A DNA stretch of 51,790 nt, the filler included, from Calcarisporiella thermophila CBS 279.70 (lineage: Eukaryota; Fungi; Calcarisporiellomycota), in assembly GCF_041956535.1 (NCBI RefSeq). It is 3 parts of 3 records of this genome, joined end to end, with 100 filler letters (N's around TTAATTAATTAA, not from the genome) between each part and the next. Parts side by side here need not be neighbours in the genome. Positions count along the whole stretch, not along the records: positions 41,034 to 51,790 come from NW_027192216.1; 2 more parts are not named here. One strand, given 5' to 3'. The notes beneath the pieces were generated by a model. The model worked only from the letters and a program-made list of their open reading frames with translations, was not told where the DNA came from and ran no database searches. Below, piece after piece: positions 41,034 through 51,790 of this stretch. Each line of letters starts with the position of its first letter. Position 1 is the first letter of the stretch. The position numbers and the translations under genes are program-made.

Positions 41034-41071
41034 GTTGCTTGATCAAAAAAAAAAACTAGAGGTCACTCACC

Positions 41072-41383
41072 GGCCGTCCCTGGATGGCACAGTGGTTAAG
41101 AGTCCCGGGGCTTAACCAATGTGTGCTGGGTTCGACTCCCGGCGATGGCACCTGTACTAGAGATGGGTCCGGGACATACTCTAGGAATCGAGCTATAAGA
41201 TACTCCGTTCTTAATAATTTGATATTGATCGTCCTCAGAAAACAAGAAATACGTTTAATATAGGGCCTGTCAGAAGAAATACATGTAAGCAATGGTTGAG
41301 CGTTAGAAATAGCGTGCAAATCCTTTCATTTAACTTGTATAGGGGACTTTTCAATAAAAGATCCTTCAATCTCAAAAAAAAAA
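41072..41383 (+). mobile_element. tRNA-derived SINE, family 1
   Basis: A box TGGCACAGTGG, B box GGTTCGACTCC, acceptor-like stem GCCGTC/GATGGC. 3' tail GACTTTTCAATAAAAGATCC followed by A10. Confidence 0.8.
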
Positions 41384-41632
41384 TCAGAAAGCGCGATATC
41401 TTTCAAGTAGAGCAGCCAATAGAATTGATTGTCGCTACGTTGCCGACCCCTCGTGGTTACTCGCCGGCCTCGTGGTTACTCTTATGCTCCCTCATGGCTA
41501 TCTTGTTGATGTTGATTGATACTTTGTTGTCTTATCTATCTCATCTTTGAACCCCAGTGAGAGTTGTTCTCCTTTGTTCACAATTCTATTTAAACCCTTC
41601 GGTTTATTTTAATGTTCAACACCAATTCCCTG

Positions 41633-41792
41633 AATTATTAAGATAAATCTCTTATTTTTATCAAGATCCGGATATCCCTCCACACAAACCTCTTTTCGCC
41701 TGTAACAGATTGAATCAGATGTTCTTGTAATTTATTTAGAAGGAAAATTTACCACTACAATCCCTCGATCGAGAGGTCACTCACTCACTCAC
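41633..41792 (+). other. Anchor/target sequence, copy 1: hairpin, motif and (TCAC)4
   Basis: Aligns by eye with the reverse complement of 51288-51443. Ends CCTC-GATCGA-GAGG-TCACTCACTCACTCAC. Confidence 0.75.
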
Positions 41793-42129
41793 GGAGGAGG
41801 GTTAGTGTAGTGGACTATCCCTGGTATGCCGATGAGAATGGCGTGGGTTTGAATCCCACTTCCTCCACCAGCACTTACTCTTAGTTTGTGACTGCTGTCC
41901 ACTTGATCAGTAATTGAGTCTTTATTATTGAAAAGATCGCTCCTACGATAAGTACAAAGATTACATCGGTTTCACGTACATGCTATTCACGACAACTACG
42001 ATATGCGCATATCGATTGAACGCCTATCTATCACGGACCTATATCTCGCTATATTAAGTCCATTGACATTAACTTCATGTAATATATGAAAATTAAATAA
42101 AAAGTTTCCATTGATTGACCAAAAAAAAA
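41793..42129 (+). mobile_element. tRNA-derived SINE, family 2
   Basis: GGAGGA...TCCTCC-ACCA acceptor stem with CCA, A box TAGTGTAGTGG, T-arm GTGGG-TTTGAAT-CCCAC. Ends ATTAACTTCATG..AATAAA..A9. Confidence 0.8.
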
Positions 42130-42146
42130 TTCGAGAGGTCACTCAC

Positions 42147-42434
42147 TTGGATACAAATCCAAGGAGACAAAATATCCTTCAACCAAAACATTTAGCTCCA
42201 ATACGATATTGCCGAATGCCCTATCATCCGTATTCCAAGTTTCCCTTTTACTTTTCTTTTCCTTTTTTATCTCCTTTCCTCTCTCGTATACCACCTTCCT
42301 TGAAAAATAGGAAGGTATCCACACTATCTACCATGTCTTACATGTATTGCTTATTATCTAATATCTTGATATCTATCAAAATCCTTTACTAACAAAAAAG
42401 AGTAGTTTTAAATAAAGATCCTTCAAAAAAAAAA
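42147..42434 (+). mobile_element. 5'-truncated retroposed insert, probably a LINE 3'UTR
   Basis: Bounded by motif copies, with a pyrimidine tract. Ends AATAAAGATCCTTC-A10 like the SINE tails. Confidence 0.6.
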
Positions 42435-42519
42435 TCGAGAGGTCACTCACCAGGTTTAACAGAGTAGGATACTTTTCAATAAAAGTTTTATTTGTTGAAA
42501 AAGGTCTTTCTTTTATTTT

Positions 42520-42971
42520 GGGGGTGGAGTAGCTTAGTGGTAAGCGCTCCCAGGTGCCATCGAGATGGCACGGGTTCGAACCCCCATCAGCACAAAAAAT
42601 GTGAATGGACACTCCACTAATTCTGTGTCTTGCTTGTCGTGTCTATGCTCTCCATTAGTATTACTTCTGTCTTTCCAGTCCGGTTTTCTACAGTCACTCT
42701 CTTCGTCCCGTCGCGCCTGGCTCCTCCACAAGTATCGCCTCTGTCTTGTCGTGTCTGGTCTTCCCATTATTACTGTCTCTCGTTACTGTTCCTTGCTTGC
42801 CGTACCTGTCGTGTCGAGTTATTCTACTATTACTGTTCCTTAATTGGTCTATACCTTCTGCCAGCAATTTGGCTATGATCTGCACAAAGGCGTACGACCC
42901 TTGATTCACCTTCAACGATTAACTTCATGAGGATACTTTTCAATAAAGATCCGTAGCTTCAAAAAAAAAAA
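42520..42971 (+). mobile_element. tRNA-derived SINE, family 3, whose body matches the LINE 3'UTR at 49985-49586
   Basis: A box TAGCTTAGTGG, B box GGTTCGAACCC. Body 42611-42960 aligns with the reverse complement of 49595-49980. Ends in A11. Confidence 0.85.
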
Positions 42972-42985
42972 GAGGTCATTCACCA

Positions 42986-43101
42986 GGGGGAGGAGTAGCT
43001 TTGGCTATAATCTGTACAAAGGCGTATGACTTTTGATCCATCTTCACCGATTAACTTCATGAGGTCACTTTCCAATAAAGATCCGTAAAATAATTAAAAA
43101 A
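42986..43101 (+). mobile_element. Internally deleted mini-SINE of family 3
   Basis: GGGGGAGGAGTAGCTT head fused directly to the TGGCTATAATCTGTACAAAGGCG..AATAAAGATCCGTA tail. Confidence 0.75.
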
Positions 43102-43268
43102 GAGATCACTCACTACCCATCCAAGCACGGGACTCTTTAAACTTTAACCTTTGCGTTCTTGTACCTAATCATCTTGTTCAGTAGACTCCCTCACAAGCAA
43201 TATAGTTTAAATAAACCACAAGGCACAAGTTCTCGCCTCCATAGAGGAAAAAAAAAGGTCATTCACCA

Positions 43269-43800
43269 TCCATCCATAGCTCTTCAGTGGCACTAGAAGA
43301 GAAAAGAGGAATTCACTTGAACCCGCAGTTGGCAGAGGCACTGTTTCAGGAAGTCCCACAAGTTGAAGGAGCATGTATACTTGCGTTTGGGAAATGCGTG
43401 CTAGCTAACTCAAAGATCTAACACTTCCGCACTAGAACGCGAAGACTATACAGGTCAAAACAAGGCGAGAATATCACATCTGAATGGAACGAGACCCTAC
43501 GCAACTTCATCAAAAGAGAGATAGCGTTGATGTACTGATTGAGGCTAAACCAACTGTACCGAAGCATAGAGACCTATTATGAAGTTTTTTAATCACAGTA
43601 TGGTCATAGAAAGTAACTTATGTAATACCGATGAGGAATGAAGACCATAGAGCACGCTTTCTTAGAATATACAAGAATTGATGACCTTTGGAGGTGATTC
43701 AATAGATCCTACTAAAAAATTATTTTATTTTCTTTTCTTTTCGTTATTACCATTTTCCATTTATTATTTGTTATTTCACAACATTTTCTACTTATAGCAC
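43269..43800 (+). pseudogene. Possible degenerate LINE ORF2 C-terminal fragment after the last motif
   Basis: Interrupted frame ..KCVLANSKI*HFRTR..SEWNETLRNFIKREI.. followed by a T-rich region. Weak similarity only, and the end is approximate. Confidence 0.3.
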
Positions 43801-44083
43801 ATTTCATCTAATATTATATATCCAACTACTGCGCATTTTATAATCGTTTATAAACAGTGTTTTTGGTTTCAATTATGAACTAAATTTTGCAAATAATCAT
43901 TTTCTAAGTTCTTTAGAGAATAATTGAGTTTGTCTGTTATTGATGTTTTAATAACAGTACGTCCTCTATCATTTTATTGAATTGTTTACTTCATCAACTC
44001 GTTATTTAGAAAGCTGAATACTAAATATTTGTGATTTCAATAGCTTTGTATTTATTAAAAAATGGAAAAACTTGGTAAATAAA

Positions 44084-45367
44084 TTATAAAAAATTCAATA
44101 TAATCAACCAGATCCAAGTAATGGTTTTAATGAGGATATTGCTTGTATTTGATCTATAACTGATATTAATCGGTTTTGGAGCCGGAGTCCTTGGTTGATA
44201 TCCACCTGCTAAGGCTCCATTTGCTATAGTTAAGTACTTGCAATATTCTCTGCCATTTTCCAGTAAACTCTTCCCAGTTTCATGGTCTACCCCGACAGAC
44301 CTCTGCCCACTCCAAATCATTTCAGCTGCTTTATTCACGTCATACCGCATTCCAGGGGTGACTAAGTCACATGCTTCGTTGCAAGGGGCATACGAGATCG
44401 CACCACTTTCAATACCAAACAGGGTTGTCATTCCAAGCTTAAGGCGATTTGCGAGATATAGATCAATTATTGCTTGAACGAGCACAGTGTAATTGCGCAC
44501 AATGGAGGTGAGTACCTGCTGACTGTTAGGGAGAGCCCCAACCGCCCAATCTGAACACCACTGATCTGTGCCATGACCAATAACAGGTTTGCCCGCGACT
44601 GCAAAAGCCTTAAGAGCTGCTGTTCCCATAGCACCTCCACCAGCGTTCCATAGCACATCTGCACCATGTTTCAGAAATATCTGGGCATAGTACTCTCCCA
44701 AAACGTTCTTTACCAGGCTCTCAGCATAAATACAGAGTACCCCACACTCACTGCACACAGATTTCACTCCGTTGGCAAAACCATTAACCAGTCTAGTGTA
44801 AGACAAACTTGTGGAGTTTGACCCACTAATAACTGCAGGGAGCCTGTTGAGATCTCTTGCAAATAAACCCGCCACAATTCCAGCAAGAAAGCCTTCATGT
44901 TCTTCGAGAAATACTGCAGAGGCTACATTCGGGGCTGAAGAAGGATATTCATAATCAAGGATTACGAATGTCGAGTTATTAACAATATTTTGACCAACAG
45001 AATTCCATGCATCAGCAGCTTGTTGGCCAAGTGCGATGATTAAATCTGATTGTGAGGCTTTTATAAGTGCATGGCTGTACTCTTCAAGCTTTTGAGTTGG
45101 GGGTACTATAGCGGGTTGAGCCTCACACATTCCTATAAAATCATTGTAAGTTTGTCATTTCATTCGACTAATATATGGGTCTAAAGAGAATATTTTACCT
45201 TGCGACCGCGAACACGCGGCTGCAGCTCCAGCCTGTATAAGATAAGCAACATTGCATTTAATGGAGAAATCGGATTGCGGAGGCAAAACGATCTGGACCG
45301 ATACAAGACGCGCAGCTGCAAATGATCCAAGCAAAAGAAAATATAAACATATATAAATTGAGATCAT
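44084..45367 (-). CDS. BMP/PnrA-family (bacterial basic membrane protein) solute-binding-like protein, secreted and possibly GPI-anchored, 2 exons
   Basis: NVASAVFLEEHEGFLAGIVAG, RLVNGFANGVKSV, GADVLWNAGG, VIGHGTDQ, VLTSIVRN. N-terminal signal peptide, intron 45198-45133 in frame, hydrophobic C-terminus. Confidence 0.8.
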
Positions 45368-46457
45368 CCCTAGGTCTCATGCTTGATAAAAGCATAATTA
45401 ATTAACACTACATTTAAAAATTAACGGTATTTTTTCAAAGGAGGCCAAATTGAAAATACGTCTAATTTAAACTACAATCAGGACACAATTTTACTCATTA
45501 AATATTTTTAAGATCGATATACTATTTTGGCTTTTGGGTGAAGAGATTTTTTTAAATATTACTTCACTGCTTAGGCATCGAATTTATTAATTTGAGATGG
45601 CATGATACTCGAAAATCAACTATATGCCTAAATATATATGACGATCTCTTTGATTATTAAAGAAAATTCAATATACTGTCATAAAAAGACAGAATTGCAT
45701 TTGCAGTATCTTTGACAAAACGGCGATTGATAAATATGAGCTACACGTATTTAAGTCGATAGTTTTTATAATTGAATCCAACATAGTGTTCTATCGTTAC
45801 TAGTTAAAGTTATTTATTTAGTATTTTAGATGTCCAATTAATTTATTGTACGCTGAATGATAACAAGCTATTATCAATTCTAAAAACCTTCTCCTTAATC
45901 ATAATCCAGATTTAGAATATCTGAGATCCAACAAACCTCACTAGCAATAATTTCTCATAAATATTCCAGGGCTGGGATTTCTGGCCTTGTATGAACGATA
46001 GGATCTGGAGAGTTCATTGTGCGATGCGATCAGGGAATTTTGAGCGGTGATCAAACACTATGATGTTTAGTCAGAGAAATGAGTAGATTGTTCGTTGATG
46101 GAGATCTAAAGCTTATCCCAATTTTCTGAGATCTGTGCAACTTTTAGCCAGGGTCGGGACACCGGTTAATAATGTTTTAAGTTCAATAATGCCGATAATA
46201 TCGTTTCTGTCGGGAGATGTACTCTAGTTCAAGTCTGCAGTCCAGGCCATACTTAGTTTTTTTATCTATTGGATATTTTAACGAAAATACTTCGTAGAGG
46301 TATTTGGATAAGATAGATTAATAAGGTAAAATCGATTAGGATATATTTCTAGCCTACTCTATCTTACAATACATGTGAGGAGTAAAAGCAGGTTATAAAT
46401 ACACAAAATATGTAAAGAAAATAATTTCGACAAGAGTATAAATGACTTTGGTTAAAG

Positions 46458-46619
46458 TGGGGGTGTTCACGCTTCCAGCTTATTCGGATTATTTTGCTTA
46501 AAAATAAGCAAAATTCTGCATTTTAACTGGCTACTAAAAATCATTAGCCAATCACAATGCGCTATTTCGCTTATTTATGATCAAAATAAACCGAATAATC
46601 AGAAGCGTGAACACCCCCA
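46458..46619. mobile_element. MITE-like element, ~160 bp
   Basis: Perfect 18 bp terminal inverted repeat TGGGGGTGTTCACGCTTC / GAAGCGTGAACACCCCCA, extending imperfectly to ~50 bp. No clear TSD. Confidence 0.7.
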
Positions 46620-46626
46620 ATAACTA

Positions 46627-48227
46627 CAAGTAAGGAAAAATGTGTCAGTGTATTTTATCAATTTTTCTTTGAATGCTCTTATCTCCTGAATGGATGGAAT
46701 ATTATACAAGCGGTTTTATTATTAAACACAGGTGGATCTACACTATGTGCTGTTCCAACCGCTAGCCCGCTAGTTATAAATGCATTTCTGATAAAACTAG
46801 GATAGCATTGAATAGCACCCCGAGTTTATGGGAAATTGATATCTTTATAAATATCGATGTGTGCCAAAGAGACCCAAATACTTTTATATTCTCTCCACCA
46901 TTCCATCTAAATATTTTTATTTGCAATGGTGGTGTTTTTATTTTTTTAACACTATCTTACATCTATGAAGCCAACTCGTAAAAAGATTCGAGATCGTGTG
47001 CTTGAACTTTCAAGAAAGGGAGAGTCCACACATAAGATTGGTGCACGAGTGAGAATAAGCCGTGAAACTACTAGAAAAATCATCAAGCAATGGAGCACCC
47101 CGAAATATCCTCTTATGAAGCCAAAATATGGTCGTCCACGTAGTCTAAGCGAATCAGATGAGAAATACATCGCTAAGAAGGCGTCAACTGAAGAGGGTTC
47201 TAAGCTTGCCGACTTGCAGCAAGTTATCAAAGAACTTAATAAGAGCGTAACAAACAAAACTGTAAAAATGATGCTCAGACGTCACGAAGTAGAGCCTCGA
47301 TCAAAGCCTAAAAAGCCTTTGCTGCTCCCACGCCATTTTAAAGTTTGATTCAAATTCGTAGCTCAACTCGCTAGATAGGATTTTTAGACCATTCAAACCA
47401 TAATATTATCGGATGAAACCATTATACTCTTTTTACAGACCACGGCAAAGGAATACACATACGTAAAGAGGGGGCAGCTTTTGCGTGAGTGCAATATTAT
47501 TCCAACCACGAAACAGGGAAAAGAGGCAATCATGGTATGATGCTGCATTACCTCGTAAGTGTGGGGCTTCTACTTCGCGTGGAAGGCGGAGTAAATGCTA
47601 GGATGTATCAGACCATTTTAGATGAGGGTTTTATTGGAATACTCGAACGGTACGGGATGGACAAGGACAAGGTCGTATTCCAACATGATAGCGCCCTCAT
47701 AACGCCAAGTCAACTCAAGCATGGCTGCGAGATCGCAATGTAAAGGACTTAGAATGGCCTGCTCAGTCACTGGATTTGAATCCCATAGAGAATGCGTGGG
47801 GCATCTTGAAGAGATGGCTTCAAGATTATTCTACTCGGCCAAAGGAAAAGCCCTGGGAACGAATCAAATACACGTGGGAGAATATAGAAAAGACCTATAT
47901 TGATAAACTATATGAGAGTATGTTGAGGAGATTCCGAGCTGTTTATAAAGCTAGAGGAGGATATACGAAGTATTGAAATATTATTGTGAAATAACGATAA
48001 ACATGTTTTCAATTTTATCATGAAAGCCCTTTTTCCTGAACATCTATATTAATACCCATGGTTTTTTAGAAAATGCATTTATAACCAGGATAGCGGTTGG
48101 AACAGCACATAGTGTAGATCCACCAGTTTTAATAATAAAGCCGCTTGTATAATATTCCATCCATTCAGGAGGTAAGAGCATTCAAAGGAAAATTGTTAAA
48201 ACACGCTGTCACATTTTTCCCTACTTG
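46627..48227 (+). mobile_element. Tc1/mariner transposon with ~170 bp TIRs and a pseudogenised transposase (46965-47976)
   Basis: TA|CAAGT...ACTTG|TA ends. [30 protein letters not shown]. Several stops and frameshifts. Confidence 0.93.
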
Positions 48228-48979
48228 TAGATCGACTGATTTAGTTATTCTTTGTATCCACGAAATCGCAAGCTATCTTTTGACTACCATCGAATTGAAT
48301 CAGTAAGCCTCCTACCAATTTCTGCTTAAGTCTTCATTTTTTTTCTCCGTGCATGTACCCACTGCTCTTTAATTGCAATAAATAGCCCTATAAGAAGTGA
48401 TATAAGGATAATTTATGGATATCACGAGGTATACTGCATTTTTCTTAATCTTTATTTTTTTTTATAATTTTTAATAATCTCCTATTAGCTATTTTCGGAA
48501 AATACAAGGAAATTTTAAGGAACCTGCAGCATTCCCCATAGTTTCCATATTTTTTTTCCTGTGATCAATTCTTATATGGTAGTCCAGATAGAGAGATACA
48601 TTTGAGTACATCTGACATTGTCTACCAATAGCGTGGCATCATCCTCTTCTCGGTCATCTATGACGATTACAATATTTATCTTGTATATGGTTCAGACAAT
48701 GGTATCGTATAGGAGCATGGAGATTTACCGGTCATTTGCTTGTACTTCCCCGTGGTATCCGAAGAGCTGTTTGAATCTCTGAGTGTGTGTCTAAGGCTTA
48801 TATGGGATCCCTTGACGTCTTCTATTGAATACCTCCCAAAGGTCAACAATTTTCGCGTATTTTCAAAGAAGGAATATTCTATGACCAATACCTTTTCACG
48901 CCGGCATCTCTTGCTATTAAGGCTGCTACTAGATTTGTTGTTATTTGGGAAAATAACAAGTCCATTCCGTTTTAACATT

Positions 48980-49572
48980 AGTCCTATATTGAAAAGTGTC
49001 CTATCTTGTTTAAAATGGATGAGTAGCTTTCATGTCATATTCCCCAAGGAAATGCTCCTGGTCTACCTTGGATGAAGAAGTATAAAAAAAAAGAAGGAAA
49101 GCGAGAAAAACAAAAAAACAAACAAAAACTAAAAAAAGTAAATATATAAGGAGTAAGACAGGTCAAGCGAAGCTGCTTTGTATCATAGAATGAATCAAAG
49201 TATTGCATAAAAAATATGATATTTGTGAACATGAAATAAAGGAATAGGATAAAATATAAAAAGAATAAGAAAAGAAAGTAAGAAGAGAAGAAGAGCAAAA
49301 AGAAAAGGAATTGGCTATAGTATGCAGCAGAGAGAGGTTGGAAGAGGTTCTCACAGCGGAGTTGCTTGATGTTAAGGCTGCTGTTTGCTACATAAAGGTA
49401 TCCTGGATAAATATCACAGTTTCATCTATAACAATCAACCAACTTCTTCTTGGGCTTTTGTCGATAAAGTCTTCCTCCTGATCCTGTTTTATTGCCGCCA
49501 ATCACTTGAAGCTTATCCTCGCCGTAGTTTGTAGTCATATTGCATTGTTATGGATATCGGGATAGGATGGTT
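48980..49572 (-). mobile_element. 5'-truncated LINE, lineage B (ORF2 C-terminus and 3'UTR)
   Basis: PISITMQYDYKLRRG..AAIKQDQEEDFIDK..RSWLIVIDETVIFIQDT is homologous to PVAITKQFDHELQRG..KKDFIDKWSRGNWVNIIDDSVFFTQDT of lineage A. Its tail matches 51052-51140. Confidence 0.75.
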
Positions 49573-49585
49573 GGTGAATGACCTG

Positions 49586-50570
49586 TTTTTTTTTGAAGCT
49601 ACAGAACTTAATTGAAAAATATCCTCATGAAGTTAATTGTTGGTGAATCAAAGGTCATATGCCTTTGTACAGATCATAGCCAATTGCTGGCAGAAGGTAT
49701 AGACCAATTAAGTAACAGTAATAGTAGAGCAAACAGACAAGCAGAGAAAACCAGACACAACAAGTTGAGTAAACCAGACACAAAAGATACGGCAAGCGAG
49801 GGATATTAATGAGAGACAGTAACAATGGAAAGGCCAGGCACGACAAGGCAGAGGAAATACTAGTGGAAGAGCCAGACACGACAGGACGGAGAGGGTGATT
49901 GTAGAGAACCAGACTGGAAAAAGCCGATAATACTAATAAAGAACATAGACACGACAAGCAAGGCACAGAATTAGTGGAGAGTGCGGTTCTCAAGCCGGAG
50001 TTGGGACTGGGGTTTGATCTTCAGAGGTGTCCTGGGTAAAAAACACGGAATCATCTATGATGTTCACCCAGTTTCCCCTTGACCATTTATCGATGAAGTC
50101 TTTTTTCCGATTCAGTTTCGTTGCCATCCACCACTTAGACTTTACTCCTCGCTGTAATTCGTGGTCAAATTGTTTGGTTATGGCTACCGGATTGGATTGG
50201 GCATCATCTAGCACTAATTCAAGTCTCGAGCGGTATATCCACAAGGCTATGTTGTGGCTCAGAGCGACCACTTCGTTGAAGCGTTGGTCTATTTGTTTGT
50301 CTTGTCCAAACAGTCTGTCTTCTCTCGTGGATTCGTGTGGCGATATTCCAGTGATTCTGCAGTTTGTCTTGTCAACTCTTTGCCAGAGTTGTGCGATAGC
50401 TGGGCAGTCTAGAAAGGTATGGGCAATTGTTTCGGGTATTCCTAGGAAATACCTTTTGCAAGTGTTTGAATTTCCAGTCCATTTGCTAGTGATGATTCCG
50501 ATAACTATTTTGTGCTTCATAAGTCTCCAGCGAAGGGTTCTGTGCTTGGGTTCTGACGGATGCTTTTTCT
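49586..50570 (-). mobile_element. 5'-truncated L1/Tx1-type LINE, lineage A (zf-RVT region, 3'UTR, poly(A))
   Basis: EPKHRTLRWRLMKHKIVIG..CKRY..PETIAHTFLDCPAIAQLW..IALWIYRSR, stop at 49990, ~400 bp 3'UTR, A9. Motif on both sides. Confidence 0.85.
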
Positions 50571-50583
50571 GGTGAGTGACCTC

Positions 50584-51020
50584 TTTTTTTTTTAAACACG
50601 CTCAAAATATTTTATGTATCTGAATAACATATACATGAGAAAAGGGTAAAACAGCTAAAATAGGTTGGGAAGGAAAGAGTAAATAATAGAACATGGTAGA
50701 ATAAAAACGTATTTTATCCAAGACAAAGAGCTCGAGAAAAAATAAAATGAGTGAAAAGCTAAAATATCTAATCACAGCATTCAAGACAGCAACAAAGACA
50801 GCTTCCAATAGCACATCCAAGATAAAGGTTTCCGCAGCAGCCGTCATCTTTCTGAGGAGGAGGTTGTTGGACGTATACGACATTGAGAGGGGGATTGGGA
50901 GCATAGGCTTGCTGTGGTGGGGGTGGATATCCATAATAACCCTTGTCTTGCTGGCCGCTCCTGTTATCAACCGGAAGTTTTAATTGCAATTGGGAGAGGG
51001 GAAGACGGGATAAAATAGAA
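50584..51020 (-). pseudogene. Processed retrocopy of a host CYSTM (cysteine-rich tail-anchored membrane module) mRNA
   Basis: Intronless SGQQDKGYYGYPPPPQQAY..VVYVQQPPPQKDDGCC..GCAIGSCLCCCLECCD*. AGG stands where ATG is expected (50962-50960). 3'UTR plus A10, flanked by identical GAGGTCACTCACCAG. Confidence 0.8.
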
Positions 51021-51035
51021 CTGGTGAGTGACCTC

Positions 51036-51287
51036 TTTTTTTTTTACAAAGGACCTTTATTGAAAAGTGTCCTATCCTGTTAAAAAGGTAGAGTAGCTTC
51101 TACGTCAAAATCACCCAGGTAATGCTCCTGGCCTACCTTGCAGAATTTGGAGGATAGAAGGAAAAAGAAAGAAAGGAAGAAAAGGATTTAAGTGTAAGAG
51201 GAAGAGAGAAAAGGTGATGAGGAGAGAGCTAGGAGAGTATGGAAACAGCAATTAGCTTGATAAAGAAGGGGATAGGAATAACTGTAA
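51036..51287 (-). mobile_element. 5'-truncated 3'UTR insert with a lineage-B-type tail
   Basis: Pyrimidine tract, CCAGG-AGCATTA-CCTGG and GTAGA-AGCTAC-TCTAC hairpins, GACACTTTTCAATAAAGGTCC, A10. Confidence 0.7.
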
Positions 51288-51443
51288 GGTGAGTGACCTT
51301 TCGGCCAAGGGATTGTAGTGGCGGATTTTCCTTATAAATAAATTACAAGAACATCCGAATCAATCTGTTACGGGCGGTTGGAGACTTGTGGAGAGATGTA
51401 CGGACTTAAAAGAGAAAAATAAGAGATTGGTTTTAATAATAAT
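51288..51443 (-). other. Anchor/target sequence, copy 2
   Basis: The minus strand reads ..CGCCCGTAACAGATTGATTCGGATGTTCTTGTAATTTATTTATAAGGAAAATCCGCCACTACAATCCCTTGGCCGAAAGGTCACTCACC, homologous to 41697-41784. Confidence 0.75.
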
Positions 51444-51790
51444 ACTAATAGAATAATATAACCAGTGTATCCTCACCTTAAAAGAGAAAAATAAGAGATT
51501 GGTGAGGAACAACAAGTCAAAATGGATGGATTTAAATAAAGATAGGAAATCAGAAAAATGACTCAAAATAGATGTTCCCAAGGATAAACTAAAAATGCAT
51601 CTTTTCAAAACAAACGATCACAAGAAAACAACAAAAGATCAATAACATAGCACTATATAATCTTATCCCTCGTCATGTGATGTCGTCGGGTGAACCGGAC
51701 TACATTAAAGACCGCCACCTCACTCCCCGAATCCCAGAGTGACTGCTTACGTGACTTCTCTGTACCAAAGACCAATATCCTCGTAACAAA

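Follow-up and report, generated by a model that had tools for sequence, protein, structure and literature searches.

Integration at a set position beside tRNA genes is a classic answer to the problem of retrotransposon survival in compact genomes. TRE5 of Dictyostelium discoideum, a non-LTR element with an APE–RT–zinc-finger ORF2 and an oligo(A) end, integrates upstream of tRNA genes, ~44–54 nt away and with the opposite transcriptional orientation, and it coexists with DGLT-A, an LTR element that lands 13–33 nt upstream of tRNA genes (PMC5911963, PMC5006619). Other LTR elements found just upstream of Pol III genes, as DGLT-A is, include Ty3 of S. cerevisiae and Tj1 of S. japonicus (PMC5911963). 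In Table 1 of a 2018 review, the non-LTR tRNA-targeted examples come only from dictyostelids (social amoebae) (PMC5911963). The literature searched yielded no report of such a non-LTR system for the Mucoromycota or for Calcarisporiella thermophila.

Several groups of non-LTR elements recognize one conserved sequence at every copy: R1 and R2 (rDNA), NeSL and SLACS (spliced-leader genes), Tx1 and Keno-type elements, and Waldo (ACAY repeats). Stringent-type LINE/SINE pairs, such as eel UnaL2/UnaSINE1, have a 3' stem-loop and a microsatellite tail. The locus described here resembles the sequence-specific LINEs in its repeated insertion at one place and in its arrays flanked by one short sequence, but that flanking sequence varies by locus. 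Unlike UnaL2/UnaSINE1, its units end in poly(A) after a shared AATAAA-containing tail, and the hairpin and TCAC run belong to the target.

The window is a 51,790-nt stretch of the C. thermophila genome, made of three joined parts. The locus occupies the part at 41034–51790 (hereafter the piece; contig MU987589.1, assembly GCA_041956535.1), which has runs of N at both sides. For a 176-aa LINE ORF of the piece, the closest relatives are all from C. thermophila. We examined ten further loci of the same genome (L002–L011), chosen via LINE-related proteins and therefore enriched for arrays, and called tRNA genes with ARAGORN. In our best reading, which we consider likely, the piece holds a tRNA-gene-targeted LINE/SINE landing site beside an LTR, behaving like Dictyostelium TRE5. 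Such a LINE/SINE system is apparently undescribed in fungi.

Two stacks of retrocopies face each other in the piece, and beside each lies a copy of what we call the anchor. The copies, 41634–41784 and the reverse complement of 51289–51440, share 80% identity over 155 columns (E 7.7e-31, self-comparison of the piece). The original prediction had paired 41633–41784 with the reverse complement of 51288–51443, had both copies enter the motif GGTCACTCAC without a preceding poly(A), and had placed a (TCAC)4 run on copy 1; all of this was borne out, with the run at 41777–41792. Its limits captured the core match but were too narrow, since repeat homology reaches 41384 in copy 1 and 51788 in copy 2. 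As the ten further loci show, the anchor combines the final 74 nt of a putative LTR (TGTTAC...GTAACA, ~420 bp) with a 77-nt spacer, in place of the predicted structured retroelement 3' end with a microsatellite tail or ncRNA. In this reading the spacer is older DNA behind the LTR 3' end, and it closes with the master target-site duplication (TSD) copy. Across the 11 loci (~190 kb sampled), it has only the two copies of the window, which are 87% identical to each other.

With at most one mismatch allowed, the 10-nt core motif has 11 copies in the piece, where 0.29 would be expected: seven on the plus strand (41061–43266) and four on the minus strand (51298 to 49574). Nine of these copies follow a poly(A) run; the remaining two are the anchor copies. 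By this placement and by the other loci described below, the recurring motif is host DNA duplicated at each landing on one spot (a 10–19 bp TSD), not a recognition sequence. A motif that recurs after every poly(A) can thus be a locus-specific TSD.

On the plus strand, the assembly gap at the left edge of the piece cuts the end of an earlier array, A0 (41034–41383), in which one unit is left with its tail and A11; a TSD-type copy (41056–41073) and SINE1 (41075–41383) come next. SINE1 is tRNA-derived, ends in A10 and recurs at L006:9992-10276, L006:15581-15865 and L008:10432-10561. LTR copy X1 follows (41384–41707), from an internal hotspot (site 1, LTR nt ~57) to the 3' end ...CCTGTAACA, as delimited by alignments with five other copies and BLAST. 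The TATTTAAA box lies inside X1, and the anchor as originally drawn begins within X1, at 41633. Between the LTR end and the TSD is spacer (41708–41768), and then comes the master, uninterrupted TSD copy TCGAGAGGTCACTCAC with two extra TCAC (41769–41792); the first unit starts after GG, at 41795.

From this point a head-to-tail array of six poly(A) units, with a TSD copy after each, covers 41793–43266 (cores at 42137, 42441, 42974, 43104 and 43257). Along it lie SINE2 (41793–42129), whose head scores a sub-threshold 26.4 bits against Rfam tRNA, a LINE 3'UTR-derived unit (42147–42434), a mini-tail with SINE3 (42451–42971), a deleted SINE3 (42984–43101) and a 143-nt mini unit (43114–43256). TSD copies in this array become shorter and more decayed with distance from the anchor. 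The outermost and most decayed unit (43267–43720, plus strand) is a fragment of an older LINE family, with 71% identity to L010:10351-10676. Reading 43267–43720 as original flank was rejected because L010 shows the old LINE fragment.

On the minus strand, LTR copy X2 (51366–51788) is complete, TGTTACGAGG...CCCGTAACA, with an internal 50-nt duplication, and its outer (5') end abuts an assembly gap. Its 77-nt spacer (51289–51365) ends in the master TSD of the minus-strand array (core 51298 to 51289). The array itself (48960–51288; TSD cores at 51033, 50581 and 49583) has four units: a LINE 3'UTR fragment (51288 to 51036), a small-mRNA retrocopy with a 73-aa ORF (51020 to 50584), a LINE-B that is truncated at its 5' end and keeps its 3'UTR and the zf-RVT C-terminus (50566 to 49586) and an old LINE-B-like fragment (49565 to 48960). 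Array units are varied retrocopies, all with the AATAAA-containing tail and A6–A12; SINE3 and the LINE 3'UTR have ~370 nt in common. In both window arrays, the outermost unit (43267–43720; 49565 to 48960) has no recognizable terminal TSD copy.

All poly(A) units of both arrays, whether tRNA-derived SINEs, 5'-truncated LINEs or the mRNA retrocopy, were inserted at the master TSD copy. The left edge of the window TSD shifts between events (TCGAGAGG, GAGG, GG) and the right edge is nearly constant; each event therefore nicked the poly(A)-less master copy beside the anchor. That master copy is intact in both arrays, and the outer copies carry substitutions. The points of 5' truncation often share a few bases with the TSD end, as expected for microhomology-mediated joining. 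In this respect the original prediction was right: the anchor side keeps the original, uninterrupted target, which the LINE/SINE set has hit repeatedly, with the nick shifting by a few bases.

The motif itself is specific to this locus. GGTCAYTCAC is absent from the ten other loci, bar one related 11-mer in L004, and arrays elsewhere in the genome have unrelated inter-unit sequences, contrary to the proposal that the motif is a target recognized by the elements. Recognition by a sequence-specific LINE of the R2, NeSL or Tx1 type was rejected when six other loci, and later all ten, proved to lack the motif. At equivalent positions in other loci, the same array architecture is built on at least eight unrelated duplicated sequences, and arrays occur there without an anchor of this kind at their 5' side. 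Four units at L006:4105-5790 are separated by a 16-nt stretch taken from the DNA 60–75 nt past an LTR end, and a decayed copy closes the array. Single or paired insertions give the same picture: one unit at L003:62-330 with an 18-nt TSD within an LTR, an acyl-CoA-binding protein (ACBP) retrocopy plus a LINE at L007:9260-10940 (17–19 nt), and a LINE inside a second LTR family at L002:9816-11365 (16 nt). In L003, a 16-nt TSD covers −68 to −83 of tRNA-Arg. L008 has two sites with no LTR: at one tRNA-Pro gene a lone SINE2 whose 15-nt TSD covers −66 to −80, and at the other two SINEs with three copies of a 16-nt TSD at −69 to −84, the last copy running into unique DNA.

The repeat on the anchor side of both arrays starts with TGTTACGAG, ends with CCGTAACA, measures ~360–420 bp and carries the TATTTAAA box. 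At least nine copies or fragments are present in the 11 loci, including a tandem pair in L007 whose members lie 4 nt apart and a solo copy at L005:9565-9897 with AATC at both flanks. A polypurine run stands before the L006 copy. Its ends, copy number, position and one 4-bp duplication identify it as a putative LTR; neither a complete element with internal gag-pol nor the gag-protease gene present in L003 was tied to it. A small-RNA gene with CCAAT and TATA boxes was also considered for this upstream repeat and rejected, given the TGTTAC...GTAACA ends, the solo copy with its duplication and the tandem copies.

Three LTR families start 9–17 nt upstream of tRNA genes (in L002, L003, L004 at two genes, L005, L006 at two genes, L007 and L009), which is why hotspots are found both in and after LTRs. 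Arrays interrupt LTRs at nt 57–74 in L002, L003, L004, L005, L006, L007, L011 and window copy X1 (A0). The junction of X1, in which poly(A) is followed by the LTR from nt ~57–59, recurs at L003:62, L006:11110 and L011:92. With an LTR at −11 to −16, a 4–5 bp duplication and a junction at −83, a distance of 72–77 nt is expected between LTR end and array; the distance measured is 74–80 nt in four copies (X1, X2 and two L006 copies). In both L006 and L007 an older LTR copy contributes its first ~60 nt as the DNA behind the inner LTR, and the 77-nt window spacer shares TCG(A/G)GAGG with that older stretch. Two 70-nt stretches upstream of tRNA-Leu (L006:6971-7040) and tRNA-Phe (L004:13425-13494) are 97% identical and start with TGTCATAA 12–16 nt from the gene. 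They are probably the 5' end of a third LTR family, and SINE2 or an assembly gap comes directly after them.

ARAGORN called 17 tRNA genes in the ten loci, 11 of which were assessable, that is, had their first 100 nt upstream assembled. At 8 of the 11 a unit has its 5' junction upstream of the mature tRNA 5' end, at a distance of 71, 80, 81, 82/83, 84, 84/85, 85 or 85 nt. Seven of the eight junctions fall within 80–85 nt, and the duplicated stretch covers ~−66 to −84. These include SINE insertions at −81 and −85 of the two L008 tRNA-Pro genes, and a full-length LINE in L005 that begins at −85 of tRNA-Asp. Orientation is similarly uniform: seven of the eight insertions are antisense and point away from the tRNA gene, and the eighth (L004 tRNA-Lys) is an inverted tail fragment beside a gap. 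The three assessable genes with no insertion are L003 tRNA-Leu, where the innermost LTR is uninterrupted, and the Gly/Asn pair of L010, which is head-to-head and only 102 nt apart. At two further tRNA genes an assembly gap or contig end starts 81–83 nt upstream, and at two others 19–22 nt upstream. ARAGORN called no tRNA gene in the piece or in L001; none is visible in the window because the outer sides of both LTRs meet assembly gaps. We infer that the window stacks adjoin tRNA genes hidden in those flanking gaps.

One full-length LINE near a tRNA gene (n = 1) has a 50-codon ORF followed by an ORF2 that opens with an AP-endonuclease N-terminus; this Exo_endo_phos region, at L005:3552-3800, scores E 5.6e-4, below the Pfam cut-off. 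LINE C-terminal fragments carry zf-RVT, and a called gene of L008 carries RVT_1 with zf-RVT. Exo_endo_phos, RVT_1 and zf-RVT were found together only in distant full-length relatives of the LINE. A HMMER search with the 305-aa LINE C-terminus returned few long relatives; this C-terminal domain evolves fast.

The anatomy, the locus-specific duplications and the distances observed at other loci, taken with known target-primed reverse transcription, suggest how such stacks could arise. An endonuclease-bearing, poly(A)-type LINE machinery, which would also carry tRNA-derived SINEs and occasional host mRNAs, would make a first nick in the bottom strand near −66 to −69 upstream of a tRNA gene, and this nick would prime cDNA synthesis on the poly(A) tail. 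A second nick would follow in the top strand near −80 to −85. The 10–19 nt between the nicks would be duplicated and the copy inserted antisense to the tRNA gene. As the tRNA-proximal TSD copy would keep the correct distance, the next insertion could reuse it. Older units would then be pushed outward, giving a head-to-tail array with one short motif before every unit and with older, decayed motif copies on the outside. A new LTR landing at 9–17 nt would separate the array from the tRNA gene, with ~77 nt left between the LTR end and the array, which gives the anchor, and would then acquire an array of its own at LTR nt 57–74, the same tRNA distance. By analogy with TRE5-A, the tether would be the RNA polymerase III transcription complex.

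Compared with TRE5 (D. discoideum) and NLTR-B (Polysphondylium pallidum), the elements here likewise use a narrow upstream tRNA window in antisense, in a compact genome and alongside closer-landing LTR elements (PMC5911963, PMC5006619). They differ from TRE5 in the window, ~−80 to −85 (duplication −66 to −84) against −40 to −54, in the host, a fungus (Mucoromycota sensu lato), and in the site itself, which tRNA-derived SINEs and host mRNA retrocopies share, with arrays of up to six units. Ahead of ORF2 there is a 50-codon ORF, judged from one full-length 5' end, whereas TRE5-A ORF1 is a 51-kDa protein. The LTR starts at 9–17 nt from the mature tRNA 5' end are comparable to the 13–33 nt of DGLT-A, although these fungal elements are known by their LTRs and positions only. 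Tandem TE dimers (McGurk and Barbash, bioRxiv 10.1101/158386 / PMC5932611) likewise consist of head-to-tail copies with a shared TSD between them at a reused site; here, in contrast, the units differ (SINEs, LINEs and mRNA copies) and reuse would go through a positional tether rather than a sequence-specific target. The behaviour is thus of a known kind, and what is new is the host, the distance and the SINE and mRNA passengers. Convergence with TRE5 is as likely as common descent, as the two are likened by behaviour alone.

A broader claim, which we regard as evenly balanced between right and wrong, is that the C. thermophila tRNA-targeted LINE/SINE system (~−84, antisense) is independent of the dictyostelid TRE elements, is the first non-LTR case in fungi, deposits processed host mRNA copies (ACBP and a small Cys-rich protein) in these safe havens and builds outward-growing stacks together with tRNA-targeted LTR elements. 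If true, this fungal LINE/SINE family would be a further, probably convergent, case with another distance, and a new system for how a target-primed element measures its distance from the Pol III complex.

Other readings fit parts of these data. In the original prediction, the anchor was an ncRNA gene or belonged to another retroelement, as its structured 3' end with a (TCAC)n tail, and the LINE/SINE set recognized it specifically. In its favour are two homologous anchor copies with an array after each, a palindrome at the junction that carries one double change and, as we found, another palindrome at the equivalent place in L006:4104-4120. The two hairpins (CCTC-GATCGA-GAGG and CCTT-GGCCGA-AAGG) read exactly as it gave them, but the compensatory C-G to T-A change between them is not meaningful: the anchor copies differ by 24 substitutions in 148 aligned bases, and at least one 4-bp hairpin changed on both sides in 28% of 20,000 permutations of the substitutions (p ~0.28), so that the covariation is no better than chance and the hairpin is not conserved. 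Shuffled sequences fold about as stably as the anchor RNA (minimum free energy z = 0.06 in copy 1, −1.22 in copy 2), and the proposed terminal hairpin is missing from the minimum-energy structure of both copies. Rfam returned nothing for the anchor at E up to 1; for the whole piece at the same limit it gave only the sub-threshold tRNA match at the SINE2 head and a MITE-like hairpin at 46463–46614. Moreover, LTR sequence makes up the upstream half of the anchor, ten array-rich loci lack both the motif and the 77-nt spacer, and other arrays duplicate unrelated sequences, mostly lacking a palindrome; we hold a recognized structured anchor to be very improbable. A splice-donor or spliced-leader target, offered as its alternative, finds no support either, as the 'exon' side of GGTGAGT differs between copies (copy 1 has a SINE there and copy 2 a LINE 3'UTR fragment) and there is no Rfam match. 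What stands of the original observation is the homology, the motif and the TCAC run, but not covariation beyond chance; of its interpretation, the anchor side as original target survives, and the structured 3' end or ncRNA, the recognized motif and the splice donor do not. If reverse transcriptase jumped onto the 3' end of a small, abundant 'anchor' RNA, as it does in U6-L1 chimeras, the arrays would be chimeric retrocopies, which fits the motif lying 5' of every unit, including the 5'-truncated ones. Such a template switch would have to copy only 10–19 nt of the anchor per event, and other loci of the same architecture duplicate what is plainly host or LTR DNA around a single insert, which makes it hardly credible.

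The position of the hotspot could instead be set by the LTRs, through their sequence or a positioned nucleosome ~60–75 nt inside the 5' end, with tRNA proximity a by-product. Most arrays do sit at nt 57–74 of three different LTR families, but the site sequences are unrelated among those families, the SINEs at −81 and −85 of the L008 tRNA-Pro genes have clean duplications and no LTR, and the L005 full-length LINE starts at −85 of tRNA-Asp; we think this unlikely. Quite unlikely, too, is a self-perpetuating hotspot, where a first insertion lands at random and the junction it leaves, poly(A) plus duplication, is favoured by an L1-type endonuclease without any positional tether. The array at L004:8600-11720 has no visible inter-unit motif, as expected for landing in A-tracts, and tandem TE dimers are known to form by double insertion into a single target site (bioRxiv 10.1101/158386). 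Such a process would nevertheless leave the 6-nt-wide tRNA distance window and the fixed antisense orientation unexplained, and the variable left edge of the TSD indicates nicks in the poly(A)-less master copy.

Some observations weigh against the best reading: no tRNA gene is called in the piece or in L001, the array-enriched set of loci still includes three assessable tRNA genes with no insertion, the outermost window units end without a TSD copy, SINE1 has unlike flanks, the L004 tRNA-Lys insertion is inverted, and the LTR is identified without its internal region. The flanks of SINE1 (41075–41383) are mismatched, with a GAGGTCACTCAC-type duplication on the 5' side and LTR site-1 sequence after the poly(A), as if two SINE1 copies had undergone unequal exchange and the left assembly gap concealed a tandem duplication. 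In the self-comparison, 43646–43706 resembles the reverse complement of 48821–48883, which may reflect an old inverted duplication common to the facing stacks. A 38-nt stretch in L004:1232-1276 is identical to 42444–42481 (a TSD end with a mini LINE tail) and is inverted; it sits beside a gap, 80 nt ahead of tRNA-Lys, where another LTR has its hotspot. Twin priming, rearrangement, or a mini-unit family with a TSD-like 5' end are possible origins.

Two of the retrocopies derive from host mRNAs. The minus-strand copy at 50584–51020 comprises a 5'UTR, an intronless 73-aa ORF, a 3'UTR and A10, with the array TSD at its flanks; the ORF is rich in Pro and Gln, its Cys-rich C-terminal tail looks CYSTM-like by eye, and Pfam returns no match. 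The other, at L007:9260-9700, is a retrogene candidate annotated as a normal gene: it encodes a 92-aa acyl-CoA-binding protein (Pfam ACBP E 3.8e-30), lacks introns, ends in an A12 tail and has a 17–19 nt TSD copy on each side, at the LTR hotspot.

Unique DNA between the facing stacks contains a minus-strand gene of two exons (44084–45367) that encodes a secreted Bmp/PnrA-like substrate-binding protein (348 aa, PF02608 E 6e-24), a family that is mostly bacterial. A decayed Tc1/mariner-type transposon occupies 46624–48230. Its inverted ends measure ~170 bp (89% identity), and its HTH and DDE_3 ORFs are frameshifted. Adjoining it, at 46458–46619, is a 162-bp perfect-hairpin MITE-like element with a sub-threshold match to Rfam MIR8562. 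Many scaffold gaps begin inside stacks (gap edges in L001, L004, L006, L007 and L009), and tRNA-proximal retroelement stacks appear to be a main cause of assembly breaks. The stacks break the assembly and also yield gene models from LINE fragments and retrocopies.
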